This document shows, in pieces, positions 196 through 54,984 of a stretch of DNA of 64,000 nucleotides. This DNA is from Tubulanus polymorphus. Taxonomy: Eukaryota; Animalia; Nemertea. The stretch's first letter is position 1; the number at the start of each line of letters is the position of its first letter. A program made the translations under genes and the position numbers. The DNA lies in contig NC_134034.1 of NCBI RefSeq assembly GCF_964204645.1, positions 12,226,962-12,290,961 of the forward strand, written 5' to 3'. A model generated the notes under the pieces. It was given only the letters and a program-made list of their open reading frames with translations, searched no databases and was not told the origin of the DNA.

Positions 196-1833
196 ATGAT
201 GGGTATGCGTAGGCAGTTGTACGCGTTATGGATGATGTCTTTAGCCGCCAATTTTTTAACAATTACCCTGACCGTTGTCAACATTCACCTGTACGGTTTG
301 AACTGCAATACTTCATGCGCAGGTAAGAAGCGACTGCTTTCAAATAATATCGATTGTACATTCTAGAGTAGTACGCAAGAATAGTTTTTTAGTGGTTAAC
401 TTGATTTCATTGAAACTATCGCTAGTACATTGTAGTAGATAGTGGCTTCATCGGGTAGATGAGACCTGTTGCAGCTACAATGCACTTAAAGTAACTTGTG
501 TTCTAAAAACAATCAAGGTTACCTGCCGTTCTAACCAGTATTCGCGTTTATTGATTTAAGACGACTACAAATTCTAGACGAACACAATCAACCCTCATAT
601 GACGTTTGATGTCGTTGTTTTGCAGGTTGTGTGTCTTTAGTGTTAATCGTTATAACCGGTATTATCAGTGATATTCGCAGACGAGATCCCAGTGATTCTC
701 ACTCCTGGTCCAGTCTCTATCGTCAATACCGATGCGTAGTAATAACGCTTATCACCGGAAGATGGCGCTACGCTCAATTCACACGTCACTCGCTGGACGT
801 CGCCAAGCAACAAGAAGCCGTTCTTGTTGATCTGATGAGGGAAGCAAGTCACACAGAATACGGCAGGAAATTCAGATTCGCCAAAATTGACGACGTAAAG
901 AAATTCCGACAGCAGGTGCCACTGTCTAAATACGACAGTTACCGTGAACTGGTGGATAGGATGATAGAAACAGACGCCGGGGACCTGGTCAGTCCGGGTA
1001 AAGCCGTCAAATACGGTATGACGTCGGGAACTACAGGCAGGAGTAAACACATACCGTACAATAATAAAGCGTGGAAAATGCTGTTTAGTTATTATCATTA
1101 TTTCTTCAGGTACATTGAGTGCAAACACGATGTCACATCAAGAGTGGGTTTGGGAAAAATATTGGAGCTACGTATGTTACATCGACCGATTCTAAACCGC
1201 TTCGGTAGGGCAGTAGCTGGGGCATTAGTTTTACTAGGTGAACAGGCTTATTCGGTAAAACCGGACTGTATGCGAGGGCAAAAACTGAGTGAATCGGTAC
1301 AGATGTACATTCAGGCGCGGATTGCTTTACAAGAACCAAAACTACAATTCATACAAGGCTCATTCCCGACTATAATGCGCAGTTTCGTTTCCACGATCGA
1401 ATCTCGCTGGCAGGAAATCTGTGACGACATCGAACGCGGTACATTGACCGATAACCTCGACCTTGACATCGACCTGCGCCGTCAGATCGTCTGCCAACTG
1501 AAACCGGATAAAGCTCGCGCGGATGAACTGAGAATGTTGTTCGGTGAAGGTTTCGATAAGTTGCTCAGTCGTGTGTGGCCGGAGTTGCAGATGGTTGCAC
1601 AGGTGACGACTGGAGCGTTCACTCACGAGTCAGCTGTCATCAGAGCCAAATATCTGCACGATTCTGTAATGATGAAGTCTATAATGCACGGAGCTACTGA
1701 AGGTTTATATGGTATCACTATGCCTGGTGTTCCTGATGGTCATTATGTTCCGATGTTACATCTACAGTTTCTAGAATTTATACCTCGTAATGAATGTGAA
1801 CTCGACAAACCGACCACCAGACTAGCTCATCAG
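196..1833 (+). CDS. GH3-domain locus, 5' variable module A (exon 196-322 + exon 626-1833); no own 3' exons
   Basis: ATG at 196 opens MMGMRRQLYALWMMSLAANFLTITLTVVNIHLYGLNCNTSCA; donor G|GTAAG at 323 (phase 1); acceptor ttttgcag at 624-625 joins in frame to ORF 631-1878; GH3 motifs QVPLSKY, TSGTTGRSKHIP (P-loop), WPEL, HGATEG, FLEFIP; phase-0 donor CAG|GTTTCA after 1833. Confidence 0.85.
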
Positions 1834-2612
1834 GTTTCAAAAATATTTTTACATCACTCTATTGGTATATTACGTTAATTTATTTTTTTTTATTTTCATT
1901 CCTCATTTCCCAAGTCTTTATGTGTTTTTTTTCTCAGATAATGATTAAAATCAATATAGCTGCAAGGCAGCGATAACATGTTTTCTACGCCTCTTACATT
2001 TGAACTCAGGGGAATGACCATAGAATTTACAAGGTTTATAAGGTAGATTCATTGCCGGGAATTCGAAGCTGATAAGAGAAACTAATGGAGAATGTGACTG
2101 AAATGGATGTTTGATTCGGATATTCCCGGAGCATTCCATTTATTTTGGCACATGAATAATGCTCACAACACAAACAAACGAAGAGTTTGTGATTTCCTAC
2201 AGCAATTATATACCTACCTACGAGAATCCTTGAAATTGAAATATATAATAATTTCAAGTTTTACCTCATTTGTTGATGGTGTTCTGTTTCGTAAATAACG
2301 AGTTTAAAATAGGATGCATACCACATACATGGAATCCACTACTTCAGAGTGTCTGTTTTATTTTTGTCAGAATTTATTATCGCGCCAAGATGCTGCTACT
2401 AGTCGAATTTGATAGGACATTAATTTTTTAGAACGCTCGCGAAAGGGGAATGGAAAATGATATCACGAAAATAACAATAGTTTCCTGCGAAGTTATCAGT
2501 GATGATAATTTAATTTTCTTTTCTGCGCTCCACTGCGTTTCAGAGCAGTTTACATACTTAAGTAAAAAAGTGCTCGATGCTTTATAACGCAGTCCTGTCA
2601 GACAACTGGATA

Positions 2613-2865
2613 TACAGTCGACCTCGCAATAATCGTCAATTTAGGGACCGGCTCAAAAGTAACGATTCATCTAATTGACGGATTAAGTGCATTGTGACTT
2701 TCTGACTCATATCACCAGTCTTTGTTTTTCAATATCTACTATGAATGAATGAGAACATGCCAAGAGGTCGTCGTGATACATATATGTATCGATTTTCTGT
2801 GTGTATTTGCTACAAAGCTATAGGGTCTGCGTCAAGGCAATATGGGCTAATTATTGCGGCACCTG
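2613..2865. mobile_element. Degenerate Tc1/mariner-type MITE remnant (duplicated at ~8073-8325)
   Basis: TA|CAGTCGACCTCGCAATAAT start and a partly complementary ATTATTGCGGCACCTG end; absent from the homologous spacer after module B. Confidence 0.35.
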
Positions 2866-3069
2866 TTGATTAATATTCATTTGTGCATCGACGGTTTAAC
2901 TGATATCATTAAATTTACGTATGAGCAGTACTTATAAACGGACTAGATGTAGCAGTATTTATGCAATAAAATGACAGCTCGGTCGCTATAGATATCTAGC
3001 GAAACCGAACAGGTTTTCAGGCTAAAGGAGAATATTTCATTCTGTGACTGCGCGGTGTAAGGCGTTTTT

Positions 3070-4697
3070 ATGACGTTGGGTATGCACAGGCAGTTATACG
3101 CGTTATGGCTGATGTTTTTGACGGCCAGTTTTGTCACAATGATCTGGATCGCTGTCAATATTCACCTGTACGGTTTGAACTGCGATATTGTATGCGCAGG
3201 TAAGAAGCGACTGCTTTCAAATATTGATTATATCGATCGTAAATTCTAGACCAAAACACGTGAAGACTTATAGTAATTAGTAGGTAGATTGTATAAGTAA
3301 TTTTAGCTTCAAGTGCACAGTGGCTCAATCAGGTTTAATGAAACCCGGCGAAGCAGCAACTGGTCACTAGTAACGAAAGCTTGCATTTCTCGTGTTACCA
3401 GTCTTCGCGGTTATTGATTTAACACCTCTTCAAATTCTAGACGACCTCGATCAACCCCGATGTTAATGACCTTTGATGTTTTTGTTTCGCAGGTTGCGCA
3501 TGTTCAGTATTAGTCGTTATAACTGGTATTATCAGCGATATTCGCAGCCGAGATCCCAGTGATTCTCACTCCTGGTCCAGTCTCTATCACCAATACTACG
3601 ACGTAGTGAAAACAATGACCACCGGAAGATGGCGCTACGCTGAGTTCATACGTCACTCGCTAGACGTCGCCAAGCAACAAGAAGCCTTTCTAGTCGATCT
3701 GATGAGGGAAGCAAGTCACACAGAATACGGCAGAAAATTCAGATTCGCCGAAATAAACAACATAAAGAAATTCCGACAGCAGGTGCCACTGTCTAAATAC
3801 GACAGTTACCGCGAACTGGTAGATAGGATGATAGAAACAGACGCCGGGGACCTGGTCAGTCCGGGTAAAGCCATCAAATACGGTATGACGTCGGGAACTA
3901 CTGGCAAGAGTAAACACATACCGTACTGTTGTAGAGCGTGGAATTCACTCATGAACGATTTCTTCCCTTTACTGAGATACACTGAATACAAACACGGTAT
4001 GACTGCACGAGCGGGACTTCGTAAAATCCTCGAGATTCTTATTCTACAAAAACCGAATTTAAACCGTTTTGGTAAACCAGTTGCCGGTATAATGGCGCTA
4101 GTAGGCGAGCATGCTTATTCGTTAAAACCGGACTGTATGCGAGGACGGAAACTGAGTGAATCGGTACAGATGTACATTCAGGCGCGGATTGCTCTACAAG
4201 AATCAAAACTACAATTCATACAAGGCTCATTCCCGACTATTATGCGCAGTTTCCTTTCCACAATCGAATCTCGCTGGCAGGAAATCTGTGACGACATCGA
4301 ACGCGGTACATTGACCGATAACCTCGACCTTGACCTCAACCTGCACCGTCAGATCGTCTGCCAACTGAAGCCGGATAAAGCTCGTGCTGATGAACTGAGA
4401 ATGTTGTTCGGGGAAGGTTTTGATAAGTTGCTCAGTCGAATGTGGCCGGAGTTGCAGATGGTTGCACAGGTGACGACTGGAGCGTTCACTCACGAGTCAG
4501 CTGTCATCAGAGCCAAATATCTGCACGATTCTGTTATGATGCAGTCTGAGTACGGAGCTACTGAGGGCAAATATGGTATCACTATGCCAGGTGTTCCTGA
4601 TGGTCATTATGTTCCGATGTTACATCTACAGTTACTAGAATTTATACCTCGTAACGAATGTGAACTCGACAAACCGACCACCAGACTAGCTCATCAG
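3070..4697 (+). CDS. GH3-domain locus, 5' variable module B (exon 3070-3199 + exon 3493-4697); no own 3' exons
   Basis: ATG at 3070 (MTLGMHRQLYALWLMFLTASFVTMIWIAVNIHLYGLNCDIVCA); donor GTAAG at 3200; acceptor tttcgcag at 3491-3492 in frame with ORF 3606-4772; motifs TSGTTGKSKHIP and YGATEG; one codon shorter than A; donor CAG|GTTTAT after 4697. Confidence 0.85.
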
Positions 4698-5647
4698 GTT
4701 TATGAATATATTTTAATCATTTTACAAGTACTTCTTATCAATTTCGTTTTATATAATTTTTCCATTCCTTAGATTCTAAGCTTTTACCGGTTTGTTGTTT
4801 TTTTTTCACAGATAATGATTATGATTAATGCACCTGCTAAGCAACGATAAGCAGTTTTCCGCACCTTTTGCATATGAAGTTAAGGGATTGAAAAATTGCA
4901 AAAGATATTTATTGCCGGGGAATAAAACCTGATATTATAACTGTAGAAAATCGGTAATGTTACTGAAATGGATATCTGATTTGGGTATTCTCGGTTCCGT
5001 CCACTTACTTTGGCACGTGACTAATGTCACAAACGATCAATATCGTGCAGTAATTATATCCGAATCCACAACAGTACTTGAAACTGAATTTTCAAGTAAT
5101 TGTACGTTTGACCGTATTTCTGGGTGGTGTTTTGTTCCGTAAAATAAACATTTTAAAATAGGATGGACGGTACACATATTGAAACTACTGGTCCAGAAAG
5201 TGTGTTTTATTTTTGTCAAAATTTATTATTACGTTTAGAAGCTGTAACTAGTCGTGTGGACGAGGCACACGTTTTATAGAACGCTTGCTGCTTGGAAAGG
5301 AGATGAAAATGACAATCACGAAAATAAACATATTATAGAATTTTCTGCGAAGTGCTAATTACTGATGATGATTTCATTTCATTTTCTCTGCGCTCGACTA
5401 CGTTTCGTGGCGGTTTACATGTTCAAATGTCAATAAGTCAAAATCAAAAATAGCTTTATTTGTTTGATAACGTAGTCGGGTCAGAAACGACTCAGTATTG
5501 TTAAATCTATACCACAAAATGAGAGGTCACAGTCTTTAAAGATATCAAACGAAACCGCCCGAACTGGTTTTTAAGCCAAGCGAAGGTATTTCTTTTTATG
5601 CGACGCAGTTTTTAAGGATTTTTTAACGAGGGTTTACTGGTGTTTTT

Positions 5648-7287
5648 ATGATGGGTATGCGTAGGCAGTTGTACGCGTTATGGATGATGTCTTTAGCCGC
5701 CAATTTTTTAACAATTACCCTGACCGTTGTCAACATTCACCTGTACGGTTTGAACTGCAATACTTCATGCGCAGGTAAGAAGCGACTGCTTTCAAATAAT
5801 ATCGATTGTACATTCTAGAGTAGTACGCAAGAATAGTTGTTTTAGTGGTTAACTTGATTTCATTGAAAACTATCGCTACTACATTGTAGTAGATAGTGGC
5901 TTCATCGGGTAGATGAGACCTGTTGAAGCTACAATGCACTTAAAGTAACTTGTGTTCTAAAAACAATCAAGGTTACCTGCCGTTCTAACCAGTATTCGCG
6001 TTTATTGATTTAAGACGGCTACAAATTCTAGACGACCACAATCAACCCTCATATGACGTTTGATGTCGTTGTTTTGCAGGTTGTGTGTCTTTAGTGTTAA
6101 TCGTTATAACCGGTATTATCAGTGATATTCGCAGCCGAGTTCCCAGTGATTCTCACTCCTGGTCCAGTCTCTATCGTCAATACCGATGCGTAGTAATTAC
6201 GCTTATCACCGGAAGATGGCGCTACGCTCAATTTATACGTCACTCGCTGGACGTCGCCAATCAACAAGAAGCCTTCCTAGTCAATCTGATGAGGGAAGCA
6301 AGTCACACAGAATACGGCAGGAAATTCAGATTCGCCAAAATTGACGACGTAAAGAAATTCCGACAGCAGGTGCCACTGTCTAAATACGACAGTTACCGTG
6401 AACTGGTGGATAGGATGATAGAATCAGACGCCGGGGACCTGGTCAGTCCGGGTAAAGCCGTCAAATACGGTATGACGTCGGGAACTACAGGCAGGAGTAA
6501 ACACATACCGTACAATAATAAAGCGTGGAAAATGCTGTTTAGTTATTATCATTATTTCTTCAGGTACATTGAGTGCAAACACGATGTCACATCAAGAGTG
6601 GGTTTGGGAAAAATATTGGAGCTACGTATGTTACATCGACCGATTCTAAACCGCTTCGGTAGGGCAGTAGCTGGGGCATTAGTTTTACTAGGTGAGCAGG
6701 CTTATTCGGTAAAACCGGACTGTATGCGAGGACGGAAACTGAGTGAATCGGTACAGATGTACATTCAGGCGCGGATTGCTTTACAAGAACCAAAACTACA
6801 ATTCATACAAGGCTCATTCCCGACTATTATGCGCAGTTTCCTTTCCACGATCGAATCTCGCTGGCAGGAAATCTGTGACGACATCGAACGCGGTACACTG
6901 ACCGATAAACTCGACCTTGACATCGACCTGCGCCGTCAGATCGTCTGCCAGCTGAAGCCGGATAAAGCTCGCGCTGATGAACTGAGAATGTTGTTCGGCG
7001 AAGGTTTCGATAAGTTGCTCAGTCGCGTGTGGCCGGAGTTGCAGATGGTTGCACAGGTGACGACTGGAGCGTTCACTCACGAGTCAGCTGTCATCAGAGC
7101 CAAATATCTGAACAATTCTGTAATGATGAAGTCTATAATGCACGGAGCTACTGAAGGTTTATATGGTATCACTATGCCTGGTGTTCCTGATGGTCATTAT
7201 GTTCCGATGTTACATCTACAATTTCTAGAATTTATACCTCGTAACGAATGTGAACTCGACAAACCGACCACCAGACTAGCTCATCAG
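5648..7287 (+). CDS. GH3-domain locus, 5' variable module A' (exon 5648-5774 + exon 6080-7287); no own 3' exons
   Basis: Near-identical copy of module A about 5.45 kb downstream; same splice sites; ORF 6085-7332 intact; donor CAG|GTTTTT after 7287. Confidence 0.85.
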
Positions 7288-8533
7288 GTTTTTAAAATCT
7301 TTTTACATCACTCTATTGGTATATTTCGTTAATTTAGTTTTTTTATTTTCATTCCTCATTTCCCAAGTCTTTATGTGTTTTTTTTCTCAGAAAATGATTA
7401 AAATCAATATAGCTGCAAGGCAGCGATAACATGTTTTCTACGCCTCTTACATTTGAACTCAGGGGAATGACCATAGAATTTACAAGGTTTATAAGGTAAA
7501 TTCATTGCCGGGAATTCGAAGCTGATATTATAATTAGAGAAACTAATGGAGAATGTGACTGGAATGTATGTTTGATTCAGATATTCCAGGAGCATTCCAT
7601 TTATTTTGGCACATGAATAATGCTCACAACACAAACAAACGAAGAGTTTGTGATTTCCTACAGCAATTATATACCTACCTACGAGAATCCTTGAAATTGA
7701 AATATATAATAATTTCAAGTTTTACCTCATTTGTTGATGGTGTTCTGTTTCGTAAATAACGAGTTTAAAATAGGATGCATACCACATACATGGAATCCAC
7801 TAGTTCAGAGTGTCTGTTTTATTTTGTCAGAATTTATTATCGCGCCAAGATGCTGCTACTAGTCGAATTTGATAGGACATTAATTGTTTAGAACGCTCGC
7901 GAAAGGGGAATGGAAAATAATATCACGAAAATAACAATAGTTTCCTGCGAAGTTATCAGTGATGATGATTTAATTTTCTTTTCTGTGCTCCTCTGCGTTT
8001 CAGAGCAGTTTACATACCTAAGTAAAAAAGTGCTCGATGCTTTATAACGCAGTCCTGTCAGACAACTGGATATACAGTCGACCTCGCAATAATCGTCAAT
8101 TTAGGGACTGGCTCAAAAGTAACGATTCATCTAATTGACGGATTAAGTGCATTGTGACTTTCTGACTCATATCACCAGTCTTTGTTTTTCAATATCTACT
8201 ATGAATGAATGAGAACATGCCAAGAGGTCGTCGTGATACATATATGTATCGATTTTCTGTGTGTATTTGCTACAAAGCTATAGGGTCTGCGTCAAGGCAA
8301 TATGGGCTAATTATTGCGGCACCTGTTGATTAATATTCATTTGTGCATCGACGGTTTAACTGATATCATTAAATTTACGTATGAGCAGTGCTTATAAACG
8401 GACTAGATGTAGCAGTATTTATGCAATAAAATGACAGCTCGGTCGCTATAGATATCTAGCGAAACCAGCCGAACTGGTTTTCAGGCTAAATGACAATATT
8501 TCATTCTGTGACTGCGCGGTGTAAGGCGTTTTT

Positions 8534-11500
8534 ATGACGATGGGTATGCACAGGCAGTTGTACGCGTTATGGCTGATGTTTTTGACGGCCAGTTTTGTCA
8601 CAATGATCTGGATCGCTGTCAATATTCACCTGTACGGTTTGAACTGCGATATTGTATGCGCAGGTAAGAAGCGACTGCTTTCAAATATTGATTATATCGA
8701 TCGTAAATTCTAGATTAAAACACGTAAAGACTTATAGTAATTAGTAGGTTAACTCGATTTTATAAGTTTAGCTTCAAGTGCACAGTGGCTCAATCAGGTT
8801 TAATGAAACCCGGCGAAGCAGAAACTGGTCACTAGTAACGAAAGCTTGTATTTCTCGTGTTACCAGAGTTCGCGGTTATTGATTTAACACCTCTTCAAAT
8901 TCTAGACGACCTCGATCAACCCCGATGTTAATGACCTTTGATGTTTTTGTTTCGCAGGTTGCGCATGTTCAGTATTAGTCGTTATAACCGGTATTATCAG
9001 TGATATTCGCAGCCGAGATCCCAGTGATTCTCACTCCTGGTCCAGTCTCTATCACCAATACTACGACGTAGTGAAAACAATGACCACCGGAAGATGGCGC
9101 TACGCTGAGTTCATACGTCACTCGCTAGACGTCGCCAAGCAACAAGAAGCCTTTCTAGTCAATCTGATGAGGGAAGCAAGTCACACGGAATACGGCAGGA
9201 AATTCAGATTCGCCGAAATTGACGACGTAAAGAAATTCCGACAGCAGGTGCCACTGTCTAAATACGACAGTTACCGCGAATTGGTGGATAGGATGATAGA
9301 AACAGACGCCGGGGACCTGGTCAGTCCGGGTAAAGCCATCAAATACGGTATGACGTCGGGAACTACTGGCAAGAGTAAACACATACCGTACTCTTGTAGA
9401 GCGTGGAATTCACTCATGAAAGATTACTTCCCTTTACTGAGATACACTGAATACAAACACGGTATGACTGCACGAGCGGGGCTTCGTAAAATCCTCGAGA
9501 TTCTTATTCTGCAAAAGCCGAATTTAAACCGTTTTGGTAAACCAGTTGCCGGTATAATGGCGCTAGTAGGCGAGCATGCTTATTCGTTAAAACCGGACTG
9601 TATGCGAGAGCACAAACTGAGTGAATCGGTACAGATGTACATTCAGGCGCGGATTGCTTTACAAGAACCAAAACTACAATTCATACAAGGCTCATTCCCG
9701 ACTATTATGCGCAGTTTCGTTTCCACGATCGAATCTCGCTGGCAGGAAATCTGTGACGACATAGAACGTGGTACATTGACCGACAAACTCGACCTTGACA
9801 TCGACCTGCGCCGCCGGATCGTCTGCCAACTGGAGCCGGATAAAGCTCGCGCTGATGAACTGAGAATGTTGTTCGGTGAAGGTTTCGATAAGATGCTCAG
9901 TCGCGTGTGGCCGGAGTTGCAGATGGTTGCACAGGTGACGACTGGATCGTTCACTTCTGAATCGGCTGTCATCAGAGCCAAATATCTGAACGATTCTGTA
10001 ATGATGAAGTTTACCGTGCACGGAGCTACTGAGGGCAAATATGGTATCACTATGCCAGGTGTTCCTGATGGTCATTATGTTCCGATGTTACATCGACAGT
10101 TTCTAGAATTTATACCTCGTAACGAATGTGAACTCGACAAACCGACCACCAGACTAGCTTATCAGGTTCACGCAAACATGCATATTTTCATTTTCTATAT
10201 CAAGAAGGTTCAATTCAATTACGCTTTATCGAGGTTCCTTGAAAAGTCATTTCAGATTAAGCTTATGACCGAGCAAAAAGTCATTTTTATCCATAAAACA
10301 TATATTTTAAAGGGTCCATGAGCACAGTGTAAAGTCATTGATCGGTTGCAAATATTCCAAATGCATATTTTTCTAGAAACACAATTTTTGCGTTCTTCAC
10401 AAGTGCGTTGCGTGAATATTCTGTTATTTCATTTTGTTCTCCTGCCGATGACTTATATTACTTTTGGCCGAAATTTTGCTCGAAATATATACCACAGAGC
10501 TTTTCACTTTTGGCTGAATCTATTCTGGGATTTCCCTCTTCATCGTACACGGATAATGTGTATCTTCTCCACCCATGTATTAACTAATAACTATGATTTC
10601 TATTTTTGGTATAGTTAGTCGAGGATGAAGAATATGAAGTTGTCAGTACAGGAATGAATGGTGTTTACAGATATAGGACCGGGGACGTGGTTAAAGTGAA
10701 AGGTTACTGGAATCAGTTACCAGTTTATCGTATAGAATACAGGTAAACTCCCGAAAACATGGCTGCCAACATAAGTCCCATTACGACATCAACGTCAAAA
10801 CACTCTTGATTGGTCGCTTCCACAATCCCTCTTCGGCATCATGTGACCACTCGTCACGAATTTCAATCTTGTATTTTTTTTCTCTCGAAGGTTGGGTCAA
10901 CTTTTGAATTTGTTTTGGGAGAAGACACCAGAGGGCGTATTTCAAGCAGCTATCGACGCAACAATGGGCGAATTGACGGAGGTCGAACTGGTCAGTTACA
11001 CGGCAACCGAGAACATACACTGGCAGGCGATTACTGGAGAAGGTGAGTTTGAAATATATACAAGGGCAGTTTTGCAGTCATGGTTTGGAGTGAAGACCAG
11101 TCTAAGACGAACTTGGTTCCATAGCTAATCGAACCAATCTAAGCTAATTGCGGTCATAAAGCCATTCTAAAAATTTCTTAGTTACCGAATCGTTAGTGGT
11201 AAGTTTTTTGCAATCAGATGGGCTTATACCAATATGTGGTTTGTGAAAATATCCGATCGTGCGTGAAACTATACCACAGGACATGTTACTCACTAGACCA
11301 GTCTAAAACCAGCATAGTCCTATAGCCGATCTAACAACTTGAGCTAAGTCTAAGCTCACTTTGGTTCTATAGCCAATCTAACAGCTTAAGACCAGTTTAA
11401 ACTCATTTTGGTTCTACAACCAATCTAACAACTTAAAACTAGCCCTTTTAAGATATTTAAACCAATTTGTAGTGAAGTCACGTTGACTGTGATGCAACGA

Positions 11501-12385
11501 GGCTCGGGAAACTATGTATCTGCATCTAATTCCATGTTCTGTGTTTATGTTTCATTAAGACGGAGGAGATGAAGGGAAGCAACGATTTTACGTGTTGTTT
11601 ATTGAGATACAAGGAGACACGGCATTGACAGCTGAACAGAAAACAAAGGTATTTCTATTAACTAAAGTTCTGCGAATTTGATAAGAATCCAGGAAAAAGT
11701 CAAACCACGATAAACCCATGGTCGGCTCCGGCCTACCATCCGGCCAGTTGTGATCTCGATCGTGTCTTTTGATTAATATTTCCCTATCACCCTTAAGTAA
11801 CTTGCCTCAGTGAGATAAGGCGTGATGCCGTTGCATCCACTATCAGTGCTGAGTGACCAGTGGGTTCGAGTCCTGCTGGCTGACTTGTGCGGGCAACACG
11901 TCAAAGGCCTTAGTCCCGTCGTGAGGTTAAACGAATAATCGGACATGGTTGGGGAAAACAAGATCCAAACGACGTTAAGCCAAAACAAACAAACAAAACT
12001 TTATACCGAGGGGGACCTTTGTAGCGTGACCTGATGCCATCACCCTATTTTTACACTTACCCACCCACTATAAGACTAATTGAACCATACGCGAAATCAC
12101 GAACATCCCCTACGAACTTGTTTATCCTCATCGTTTTTTTCCCCCTCTTCGTTCTAGTTCGACGAGAATTTGATTCGTAAATTCGACGTTTACGGCATGC
12201 TCAGGAAAAACGGTTCGATCAGTCCCATGCAGGTGATACAGGTGCAAAAGGGAACGTTCCTCGAGTTGAAACTTCTTTACCTAGAACTGAACCCGAACAC
12301 AACCAGCAACCAATTCAAACAGCCCAGAGCTATTCGAGATGAAAGGTGTCTGGAATTAGTCAAACGTAACATCTTTCAAGCTTGA
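8534..12385 (+). CDS. GHDC: Complete GH3 domain-containing protein (GHDC-like), 644 aa: module B' exons 8534-8663, 8958-10165 + shared exons 10615-10742, 10891-11042, 11560-11648, 12158-12385
   Basis: All introns GT-AG with compatible phases (1,0,2,1,0); spliced length 1935 nt = 645 codons; junction RLAYQ|LVEDEEYEVVSTGMNGVYRYRTGDVVKV contains GH3 motif III (YRYRxGD); later exons give NLFWEKTPE, FYVLFIEI and NQFKQPR (cf. plant GH3 QYKTPR); symbol denotes family likeness, not proven orthology. Confidence 0.9.
10615..12385 (+). CDS. Single-copy 3' (constant) exons of the GH3 locus: 10615-10742, 10891-11042, 11560-11648, 12158-12385
   Basis: No copy of these exons is present in the spacers 1834-3069, 4698-5647 or 7288-8533; the first acceptor (ggtatag|TTA GTC GAG) is phase 0 and matches the donors of all four modules. 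Confidence 0.85.
11063..11446. mobile_element. Degenerate MITE-derived repeats in a GH3 intron (same family as 55434-55567)
   Basis: Repeated agaccagtctaa / ttggttctatagccaatctaacaactt blocks shared with 55434-55567, ~41470-41625 and ~58150-58270. Confidence 0.55.
11803..11999 (+). mobile_element. tRNA-derived SINE in the last GH3 intron
   Basis: A-box-like gcctcagtgagataaggcg, B-box GGTTCGAGTCC, 3' end gacgttaagcc followed by an (AAAC)n tail. Confidence 0.6.
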
Positions 12386-12625
12386 AATAGATTTATGAAT
12401 ATGAGAAATTAGCAATTTCGTCGCACTTGTTTCTTAGAAACGTAATAAGTTTTAAGATGAACATTGAGAGAAGAAAACGATTTCTAAATATTGTGATTAT
12501 TTTAACGTCTGGGGATTACTATAAGCTTAAACTTTTCAAACAGCTATTTCCTCATTTTTTGTTTATTAGAAAATCATACGGTAGTTTTCGATTTGAAGTA
12601 TTCCGGTTTAGGAATATCAATTCCG

Positions 12626-13627
12626 GATTACAAACTCTCTACCGGCCGCTTCCGTTAGGTTTACAGATTACAAACTCTCTGCCGACCGCTTCTATCAGGT
12701 TTACAGATTACAAACTCTCTACCGGCCGCTTCGATCAGGTTTACAGATTACAAACTCTCTACCGGCCGCTTCTATCGGGTTTACAGATTACAAACTCTCT
12801 ACCGGCCGCTTCTATCGGGTTTACAGATTACAAACTCCCTTCCGGCCACTTCTATCAGGTTTACAGATTACAAACTCTCTACCGGCCGCTTCTATCAGGT
12901 TTACAGATTACAAACTCTCTACCGGCCGCTTCTATCAGGTTTACAGATTACAAACTCTCTACCGGCCGCTTCTATCAGGTTTACAGATTACAAACTCTCT
13001 ACCGGCCGCTTCTATCAGGTTTACAGATTACAAACTCTCTACCGGCCGCTTCTATCGGGTTTACAGATTACAAACTCTCTACCGGTCGCTTCCATCGGGT
13101 TTACAGATTACAAACTCTCTACCGGCCGCTTCTATCGGGTTTACAGATTACAAACTCTCTACCGGCCGCCTCTATCGGGTTCACAGATTACAAACTCTCT
13201 ACCGGCCGCTTCTATCAGGTTTACAGATTACAAACTCTCTACCGGCCGCTTCTATCGGGTTTACAGATTACAAACTCTCTACCGGCCGCTTCTATCAGGT
13301 TTACAGATTACAAACTCTCTACCGGCCGCTTCTATCAGGTTTACAGATTACAAACTCTCTACCGGCCGCTTCTATCAGGTTTACAGATTACAAACTCTCT
13401 ACCGGCCGCTTCTATCAGGTTTACAGATTACAAACTCTCTACCGGCCGCTTCTATCGGGTTTATAGATTACAAACTCTCTACCGGCCGCTTCTATCAGGT
13501 TTACAGATTAAAAACTCTCTACCGACCGCTTCTATCAGGTTTACAGATTACAAACTCTCTACCGACCGCTTCTATCGGGTTTACAGATTACAAACTCTCT
13601 ACCGGCCGCTTCTATCGGGTTTACAGA
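12626..13627. repeat. 40-bp minisatellite, ~25 copies
   Basis: Unit ttacagattacaaactctctaccggccgcttctatcaggt. Confidence 0.97.
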
Positions 13628-15062
13628 ATATGCTAATTCCGGAATAGGTAGAGCGTATTCTGGTTGAAACGTACGCGCCAGAAGAGAATCCCGGAATCGG
13701 CAGATGTCAATCGAAACCTGCCTAAAGTTCATAATATGAGCCCTATGAAGAATTCAACGGATCCAAATATTATTCCTAGCCCGACCCGATACTGTCAAGT
13801 ACTAAACTGAAGTATACACTAGAAAAATAACTTGTCAATAAATCTAAAAGCGACGAAAATATGTCGATGAAATTAAGCGCGGTAATTGATCTGAATTTGT
13901 GGAAATGAATTTTAGTAAGGCGACGAGTAGCGAGCGAACGAGGTTCAATGGTCGTAACCCAGACGCGTAAATTACATTCGATAAAAACGTCGTGTCAAAA
14001 TGTGACAAAACAAGTGGCGCTCTTGACTTGATTTTCCGCATTGAAAACGACGCCATTTTCACCGGCAAATAATAATGTTCGCCCCTAGTAGAAACCGATT
14101 ATGCAAATGAAGGGCTTCTCGACGAGTCTCAGCGAGATATAAACAAGGTCCATTAGTCGAGATGAGAATATATTCATTGTTAGGCGAGGATTTATATCGT
14201 TAGAAGTTTCTACTCTTTACGATAAGGATTTAGAGTCAGATTTGGCCCGTTGTATTGTGAATATTTGTTAGCTGGAGTGAATCTCCCGACGGTGGGGTAT
14301 TCGTGCGCCGGAAAAAAATAATCCCTCTCCGTTTAGTTGTCGAGAAACAACGGATTAACGGAAGCATAAAGAGATTAGGATTATCATGGTTCTGTTTCGG
14401 CGTTCGATGGACGCGGAAAGAAATTATAGGTATTGAATTTGGAGCGAGATGTAGCGCAAGTCTAAGGACGGAGCGCCCCCTGGGGAGTGAGTAGCGATAG
14501 GTCAGACTTGATCCCGGTCCACGCGGGGATAATTACGAACAGACTTTAATAAAATCCCGAAGCGCATGAAATTGAATAACGATAATATAATCGCGTTGTA
14601 AGATACCGGCTAAACGAATGATAAAATGTCTGCCGCTGACCTCTTCTGGGAACGATCTCTCTCAGTAGATCAACGGGGTCAAAACTCCTCACCCTATAAT
14701 TCGGTTGGGACGTTTGTACAAGCAGTTTGTCACTCACTCTCTATAACTGAGGTACATTTATTCCTCACGACGGTTTTTCCTCAACTTGACCACTGAAAGC
14801 AAGATTCTCGCTAAACTTTCCGTGTTCGTACGTAACTAGTCGTCGGAACTTTCCGCGGGTCTGGTTGTCAATAACGGATGACTCCAATAAATTCGCGGGT
14901 CGGCTTGAAATAAGTAACCGGTTAAAAGAATTATCGAATTGGTTTGAAAACCAAAGAACAAGCACATATCTATATAACCCACCTCTAAAAGTTTGATAAA
15001 ACGTCCCACATCTGTGTATAAAATGTGATCGTATGTTCTGTATTGAAATAGTATTCCGACAA

Positions 15063-36847: not shown

Positions 36848-36888
36848 TCGAGAGAGGAGAGAGAGAGAGTGAGGAGAGAGAGAGTGAT

Positions 36889-48045: not shown

Positions 48046-48830
48046 AACTGTGGAACTGGATTCAGAGTGAAATTAGGCCAATACAATTGTGGAACTGGAT
48101 CCACAGTCAAATTAAACCCACACAACTGTGGAACTGGGTTCAGAGTCAAATTAAACCACACAACCGTGGAACTGGGTTCAGAGTCAAATTAAACCCACAC
48201 AACTGTGGAACTGGGTTCAGAGTCAAATTAAACCCACACAACTGTGGAACTGGGTTCTGAGTCAAATTAAACCCACACAACTGTGGAACTGTGTTCAGAG
48301 TCAAATTAAACCCACACAACTGTGGAACTGGGTTCAGAGTCAAATTAAACCCACACAACTGTGGAACTGGGTTCAGAGTCAAATTAAACCCACACAACTG
48401 TGGAACTGGGTTCAGAGTCAAATTAAACCCACACAACTGTAGAATCTGACCCAGAGTCAAATTAAACCCATATACAAGTGTGGTCCAGAGTCATATCAAA
48501 CCTATACAACTGTGGAACTGGATCTAGAGTCAAATTAAACCGTCACAACTGTGGAACCGGCTTCAGGGTCAAATTAAACTCACACAACTGTGGAACTGGG
48601 TTCAGAGTCAAATTAAACCCACACAACTGTGGAACTGGGTTCAGAGTCAAATTAAACCCACACAACTGTAGAATCTGACCCAGAGTCAAATTAAACCCAT
48701 ATACAAGTGTGGTCCAGAGTCATATCAAACCTATACAACTGTGGAACTGGATCTAGAGTCAAATTAAACCGTCACAACTGTGGAACCGGCTTCAGGATCA
48801 AATTAAACTCACACAACTGTGGAACTGGAT
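48046..48830 (+). repeat. Largest array of the 39-bp repeat (~20 units)
   Basis: Unit aactgtggaactgggttcagagtcaaattaaacccacac, with an internal higher-order duplication. Confidence 0.95.

Positions 48831-54067: not shown

Positions 54068-54984
<917 letters not shown>

Follow-up and report, generated by a model that had tools for sequence, protein, structure and literature searches.

A probable GH3 gene with ten tandem 5' cassettes and one shared 3' half in the nemertean Tubulanus polymorphus

The 64,000-nucleotide (nt) stretch of Tubulanus polymorphus NC_134034.1 (contig C10) that was analysed here, referred to as the window and corresponding to C10:12226962-12290961, opens with four tandem two-exon modules encoding the N-terminal part of a GH3 enzyme and one set of downstream exons encoding the remainder. 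Coordinates without a contig name are window positions. A six-frame search of the whole assembly (268 Mb, 77 contigs) with the large exon of the first module as query returned ten open copies of this second exon in tandem on C10, and an ATG exon precedes each copy (10/10) when the 40 kb upstream of the window are included. The locus, spanning roughly C10:12,213,700-12,239,350, is best read as a single GH3 gene with ten alternative 5' cassettes and one shared 3' half, a reading to which we assign a probability of about 0.8. Cassettes were named V1 to V10. V1-V6 lie upstream of the window at C10:12213733-12226206, while V7-V10 are the modules A, B, A' and B' of the original prediction, which was made from the letters of the window. 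All four of these modules, each with its own ATG and free of stops, were recovered by repeat finding and alignment where they had been placed; the array itself turned out to hold ten members, six of them outside the window, and not four.

The cassettes are built alike. Exon 2 is 1205-1208 nt long in 10/10 cassettes and ends CAG|GTT in phase 0, the exon-1 donor GTAAG is likewise kept in 10/10 (CAG|GTAAG, phase 1, in V7-V10), and all ten have a stop-free frame and intact splice sites. The predicted one-codon difference in large-exon length and the phase-0 CAG|GT donors are accordingly found, exon 2 being either 1205 or 1208 nt long. The ATG exon measures 127 or 130 nt in V7-V10. Intron 1 measures 79-557 nt among the ten cassettes, with about 300 nt in V7-V10, inter-cassette spacers measure 294-1246 nt and amino-acid divergence between cassettes spans 3-17%. 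The order A-B-A'-B' in the window is the tail of a (B A)(B A) B pattern, and repeat finding together with a four-way alignment gave a duplication unit of 5.46 kb in the V7-V10 region. A cassette plus the constant exons encodes a protein of 642-644 amino acids (aa), and the 643-644 aa foreseen for V7-V10 were reproduced.

The constant exons have phases 0/2/1/0 and encode 198 aa. The first and the last of them each have one high-identity copy in the genome, both 3' of V10, and the claim of a single downstream exon set, first made for the window, therefore holds for all 268 Mb. No relics of constant exons were found between cassettes in protein- and DNA-level searches; the only constant-region sequence with other copies was a dispersed intronic repeat at 11076-11491. 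The gaps separating V1-V5 are merely 294-332 bp and are thus too short to hold the 1.77 kb constant region. As a control, GH3 loci elsewhere in the genome were inspected where exon 2 matched over at least 350 residues, and 8/8 have an adjoining exon-3 match while 7/8 also have a last-exon match, the exception being a locus on C1. Since these paralogues keep their own 3' exons, ordinary tandem duplication in the T. polymorphus genome gives whole genes and the C10 locus is the exception. The eight loci include an ordinary tandem-gene control at C3:8621315-8629765, where three GH3 paralogues, about 29% identical to the C10 cassettes, each have their own C-terminal exons; one of their large exons contains a TAA.

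Pfam domain searches were run exon by exon. PF03321 (GH3 N-terminal) matched exon 2 of V7 with an E value of 8e-52 and is also precomputed on the RefSeq proteins, PF23571 (GH3 central) matched constant exon 1 (E 4e-11) and PF23572 (GH3 C-terminal) matched the last exon (E 1.5e-7), the latter two domains being present in the constant part only. The motifs SGTTG..K and YG.(S/T)E occur in 10/10 cassettes and YRYRTGD in constant exon 1, and all of them align to plant GH3 motifs. An alignment of 33 animal and bacterial homologues contains 26 invariant residues, 12 of which fall in the constant part, a C-terminal lysine and the region of YR.GD among them, so that no cassette is likely to work as an enzyme by itself. 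Database protein P0002, which consists of V4 and the constant part, is predicted to form a complete two-domain GH3 fold: its AlphaFold (AF2) model has a mean predicted local distance difference test score (pLDDT) of 85 and a predicted template modelling score (pTM) of 0.82, and its best rigid match is AtGH3.15 (6e1q; target TM 0.83, root-mean-square deviation 3.4). On domains and motifs, the product of the locus is a GH3 acyl-acid amido synthetase, that is, a predicted conjugating enzyme. Plant GH3 proteins (AtGH3.15, GH3.6, GH3.12 and JAR1) and vertebrate GHDC have the same Pfam domains, motifs and two-domain fold as the nemertean proteins, whose nearest named relatives outside the species are fish and invertebrate GH3 domain-containing proteins at about 26-32% identity. 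Each of the GH3 homologues found is a single protein of some 560-630 aa. The nemertean proteins have in addition two N-terminal hydrophobic helices, which every one of the ten cassettes encodes, near residues 10-28 and 39-58. The isozymes would thereby be anchored to membranes. The literature searched gave no biochemical function for any animal GH3/GHDC member, and GHDC there was mostly an abbreviation for a bile acid.

Splicing of the locus was evaluated with contigs of four public runs aligned to window positions 6400-12390 (5991 bases). In run X2, whose type is unrecorded, exons were covered far more deeply than spacers, and four GT..AG joints were seen that are not in runs X1 and X3; X2 was treated as RNA-like, and X1 and X3 as DNA-like. 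Three of the joints, 10742->10891, 11042->11560 and 11648->12158 (depth 1330), are exactly the predicted junctions between constant exons. The fourth, 7287->10615, skips V10 entirely and was found in two contigs with a summed depth of 654. Its short side comprises 26 nt and V5-V9 share their final 40 nt without a difference, but V10 alone has a T at position -6 of the donor, which rules it out as the source of the joint. Two loose contig ends were also found: the letters preceding position 8953 match the end of V4 exon 1 and those following position 8665 match the start of V3 exon 2. These are spliced intron-1 joins of the distal cassettes V3 and V4. Run X5 (2015, same species label) gave no contigs on 6400-12390.

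The RefSeq annotation already contains part of this architecture. In LOC141911654, isoforms X1, X2 and X3 correspond exactly to V3, V4 and V2, each followed by all four constant exons, while isoform X4 is V10 from residue 85 and isoform X5 is V4 from residue 112, both again with the constant part. Alternative isoforms in the NCBI pipeline generally need transcript support. In all, RefSeq divides C10:12213733-12239343 into five genes (LOC141911620, LOC141911654, LOC141912164, LOC141912120 and LOC141912165). In the original prediction the architecture was not known to have been described for GH3/GHDC genes, which is true of the literature searched, where no cassette array was found for them, and not quite true of the databases, given these isoforms.

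The cassettes, the youngest pairs included, are under purifying selection. Mean non-synonymous divergence (dN) among the ten is 0.075 and mean synonymous divergence (dS) is 0.259, a ratio of 0.29. V7 and V9 differ by 12 non-synonymous and 17 synonymous changes, giving a ratio of the corresponding proportions (pN/pS) of 0.20 (p = 2e-5), and pN/pS is 0.34 for V6-V8 (p = 0.003) and 0.33 for V8-V10 (p = 9e-5). As all cassettes are constrained and a cassette alone is unlikely to be functional, the cassettes are probably joined to the constant exons. The variable-constant interpretation put forward in the original prediction is thus upheld by the ten-to-one layout, the joint that skips V10, the RefSeq isoforms of V2, V3 and V4, and purifying selection.

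Variation among the cassettes is clustered in three places, namely exon 1, an 88-codon block right after SGTTG..KHIP and a 12-codon patch around YG(A/G)TEG. Mean dS in the 88-codon block is 0.74 (maximum 1.56) as compared to 0.11-0.22 in three flanking segments, and in deep pairs the contrast between block and flanks is highly significant (Fisher p 4e-7 to 1.5e-14). The block falls into old classes, {V4, V7, V9}, {V1, V5}, {V3}, {V6, V8, V10} and {V2}, and divergence in the flanks is almost uniform from cassette to cassette. Gene conversion that homogenises the flanks but spares the block would be expected to yield such a pattern. When compared to solved plant GH3 proteins, the block aligns to roughly residues 113-210 of GH3.6, with motif 1 before it and the MY.Q motif after it, and the 12-codon patch aligns on the M-Y-A-S-S-E turn. 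In the structure of GH3.6 with an inhibitor, the acyl-acid pocket is made up of Tyr134, Leu175, Tyr178, Tyr179, Phe184, Thr193, Tyr195, Val231, Ile312, Met337, Ala339, Ser340 and Ser341 (PMC9894192). Mapped by region, 11 of these 13 residues fall in homologous parts of the cassettes, seven in the block and four in the small patch. The most variable stretch corresponds to helix 188-208 in the P0002 model. Because variation concentrates in two pocket-homologous patches that were spared homogenisation, the isoforms would be expected to differ in acyl-substrate preference, and the differing acyl specificities suggested in the original prediction thus gain indirect support.

The start codon comes from the cassette, as do both N-terminal hydrophobic helices and some 400 residues of the GH3 N-terminal domain, the part that binds acyl substrate and ATP. 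This domain is completed by the four 3' exons, which also encode the hinge and the mobile C-terminal domain, including residues invariant in the homologue alignment. In the proposed mechanism, a transcript starting at one cassette loses its own small intron 1, whereupon the weak phase-0 donor of exon 2 would be joined to the sole phase-0 acceptor at 10615, intervening cassettes being skipped, to give an enzyme of 642-644 aa. Each cassette would have a promoter of its own. The exon-2 donors have a T at +3 in 10/10 cassettes, where the homologous donors of the six paralogues read have A or G, which makes the weak T+3 donor a derived character common to the array. Exon definition may be disfavoured by the weak donors and the large exons, and skipping thereby allowed. 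All ten cassettes are probably used in this manner; for V2, V3 and V4, joining of the individual cassette to the constant exons is annotated in RefSeq. Apart from the donors themselves, about 120 nt 3' of the V1-V9 exon-2 donors are more conserved (0.67) than intron 1 or the upstream regions (0.27-0.34). These flanks lie within C10:12215625-12226300 and at window positions 1834-1955, 4698-4820 and 7288-7410, the flank of V10 being different, and they may represent either a splicing element within the intron or conversion tracts that extend past the exon.

A number of observations weigh against so broad a use of the cassettes, and some of them fit an alternative in which only some cassettes (V2, V3, V4 and perhaps V10) are full-length, the others, V7-V9 included, being recent 5' partial duplicates that give truncated products or nothing. 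The annotation treats V1, V5, V6 and V8 as truncated genes of their own, whose products of 447-482 aa end locally, just past the exon-2 donor, by read-through in the V6 and V8 models and by splicing to tiny local exons in those of V1 and V5. V7 and V9 are in no RefSeq protein model, an acceptor-like poly-T CAG lies about 100 nt past the donors of V5-V9, and V6-V10 stem from recent duplication of the 5.46 kb unit. As the ends of V5-V9 are identical, the 7287->10615 joint proves splicing of a non-V10 cassette and not of V7, V8 or V9 individually. Of the joints that the original prediction expected, 7287->10615 was thus seen, with this origin, while 10165->10615 was not listed among the run contigs over 6400-12390, contigs showing presence only. 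Good acceptors precede every downstream exon 2, and a V1 transcript must skip up to nine competent-looking exons of 1.2 kb. A block located about 70-150 nt upstream of the ATG is alignable in 10/10 cassettes, but the 160 nt before the ATGs are conserved no better than intron 1, and upstream conservation was for this reason dropped as evidence for promoters. With regard to substrate preference, the block aligns poorly to plant GH3 proteins, which keeps the pocket mapping from being made residue by residue, and positive selection in the block is not claimed, pairwise dN/dS being 0.25. Still, partial use of the array is considered unlikely. Even the youngest pairs are significantly purified by selection, no cassette contains a stop or a frameshift, and a cassette alone would be without the 12 invariant residues of the constant exons. 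The identity of the last 40 nt blocks assignment of short reads, and the truncated RefSeq models may stem from short junction reads that are unassignable among near-identical cassette ends, which could alone explain them. A local mini terminal exon after the cassette donors was considered and rejected, as no such junction is listed in the RNA-like run and depth in the V9-V10 spacer is low, at 8-31 in run X2 compared to 654 for the junction to the constant exon; it survives only as a part of the partial-use account.

Two further alternatives were weighed. A single promoter upstream of V1 could produce one long primary transcript from which cassettes are spliced in a mutually exclusive manner, and the upstream blocks, being just moderately conserved, and the low contig coverage through inter-cassette spacers in the RNA-like run would agree with this. 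Carried-over DNA, or pre-mRNA started at upstream promoters, would explain that coverage just as well. Every cassette has its own ATG, no convincing 3' splice site precedes any ATG when 30 nt and 300 nt upstream are read by eye, and the full-length RefSeq isoforms begin coding at the ATG of the cassette itself. We consider a single promoter improbable. Highly improbable is an assembly artefact, in which ten complete genes would have been collapsed or mis-joined, or one cassette artificially multiplied. Assembly is prone to err on tandem repeats of 1.6-5.5 kb, and no single DNA contig among the runs spans the stretch. On the other hand, all ten cassettes differ from one another, not only in amino acids but also in the lengths of intron 1 and of the spacers, and there are no other constant exons in the genome. 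A DNA contig of run X1 matches 10130-11246 with zero differences, DNA depth on the constant exons is about 30-36 and not multiplied, and the RNA junction that skips V10 agrees with the assembled order. A single gene with ten alternative cassettes consequently accounts best for the locus. The features that fall within the window are collected in Table 1.

Table 1. Positions of the cassettes, their variable segments and the constant exons in the window
Feature	Position	Strand	Remarks
V7 exon 1	196..322	+	ATG, first hydrophobic helix, donor CAG|GTAAG, phase 1
V7 exon 2, 1208 nt	626..1833	+	second hydrophobic helix and GH3 N-terminal domain; ends CAG|GTTTCA, phase 0; PF03321 E 8e-52
V7 hypervariable block	1036..1299	+	alignment columns 181-268, right after SGTTG..KHIP; equivalent region of plant GH3 has seven acyl-pocket residues
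V7 second variable patch	1672..1707	+	alignment columns 393-404, around YG(A/G)TEG; homologous to the beta8-turn-beta9 pocket motif of GH3.6
V8 exon 1	3070..3199	+	
V8 exon 2, 1205 nt	3493..4697	+	ends CAG|GTTTAT; RefSeq LOC141912165 is a read-through truncated protein
V9 exon 1	5648..5774	+	
V9 exon 2	6080..7287	+	ends CAG|GTTTTT; RNA junction to 10615 maps to the donor at 7287
V10 exon 1	8534..8663	+	
V10 exon 2	8958..10165	+	ends TATCAG|GTTCAC (Y variant); 449 nt before the first constant exon
Constant exon 1	10615..10742	+	phase-0 acceptor; GH3 central domain (PF23571), YRYR.GD motif
Constant exon 2	10891..11042	+	junctions in RNA-like contigs
Constant exon 3	11560..11648	+	junctions in RNA-like contigs
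Constant exon 4 with stop	12158..12385	+	GH3 C-terminal domain (PF23572); lysine invariant in homologue alignment

Repeats are found in and around the gene. The introns of the constant region contain very high-copy repeats at 11076-11491 and 11800-11999, where word depth in the DNA runs reached about 48,000 and about 4,600 as compared to about 30-60 elsewhere. Copies of the 11076-11491 repeat lie about 300-460 nt before the V1 ATG, within intron 1 of V3 and, some 36 kb before the window starts, in an array. At 12626-13627, starting about 240 nt past the stop of the constant exons and hence in or just beyond the 3' untranslated region, there are 25 near-perfect copies (96% matches) of a 40-nt unit; an open reading frame of 406 aa in this interval was rejected as an artefact of the tandem repeat. 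ARAGORN detected no tRNA in 10000-14000. Further downstream, a 39-nt tandem-repeat family occurs in either orientation in at least four places of the window (16869, 24842, 40666 and 48046-48828), and long simple repeats at 36850 (GA), 41971 (AGAGAGG) and 54073-54984 (CTCT) account for spikes in the skew of the window.

The C10 locus matches the class of genes with multiple variable first exons, which includes UGT1, GCNT2, UGT2A and Pcdh, and departs from it in host phylum and enzyme family, in having cassettes of two exons and in the apparent prominence of conversion. In UGT1A, as in the GH3 array, tandem 5' units with their own start codons encode the substrate-recognising N-terminal domain of a small-molecule conjugating enzyme and share one 3' set, which in UGT1A comprises exons 2-5. 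The hydrophobic helices of the GH3 array lie in its variable part; the transmembrane segment of UGT1A lies in the constant part. UGT1A is a vertebrate GT-B glycosyltransferase whereas the nemertean locus encodes an unrelated adenylating enzyme of the GH3/ANL type. Furthermore, the variable unit of UGT1A and Pcdh is a single exon, while the GH3 cassette consists of two exons with a real internal acceptor, and each downstream exon-2 acceptor must be skipped. On account of its two-exon cassette, the C10 locus is a variant of the variable-first-exon architecture and not a typical member. The hypervariable regions of the UGT1A variable units line the acceptor pocket (PMC1885805, PMC3325998). The variable-constant organisation of the Ugt1, Gcnt2 and Ugt2a clusters has been called vertebrate-specific, and gene conversion has been reported not to be predominant for UGT1 (PMC1885805), whereas it is apparently strong in the GH3 array.

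The clustered Pcdh alpha and gamma genes similarly combine many large variable 5' exons with shared constant exons. Pcdh variable exons also have homogenised and unhomogenised segments, and the contrast between block and flanks in the GH3 array fits this pattern. The product of the GH3 array is an enzyme, however, while Pcdh proteins are adhesion receptors whose stochastic promoter choice is governed by CTCF and an enhancer (PMC3333863).

Clusters of variable first exons are the textbook case of one locus yielding protein diversity. With the locus described here, this architecture would have arisen independently in a spiralian, and on an unrelated enzyme fold. Skipped internal acceptors together with uniformly weak GTT donors make it a natural test of long-range 5' splice-site choice, and the public annotation, which splits one gene into five, could be corrected. 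Tentatively, and at somewhat less than even odds, we propose that a panel of the UGT1A kind has been built independently in a nemertean GH3 gene, with at least ten membrane-anchored isozymes that have different acyl pockets and a shared catalytic C-terminus and are selected by choice of cassette. As the isoforms differ mainly in the pocket-homologous segments, a comparison of their substrates could reveal the conjugated compounds and would offer a handle on animal GH3/GHDC proteins. If the proposal is true, the locus would be an invertebrate metabolic-enzyme example of variable-first-exon architecture, and it would give a first functional clue to animal GH3/GHDC proteins, namely a role in conjugating a range of carboxylic acids in detoxification, signalling or chemical defence.

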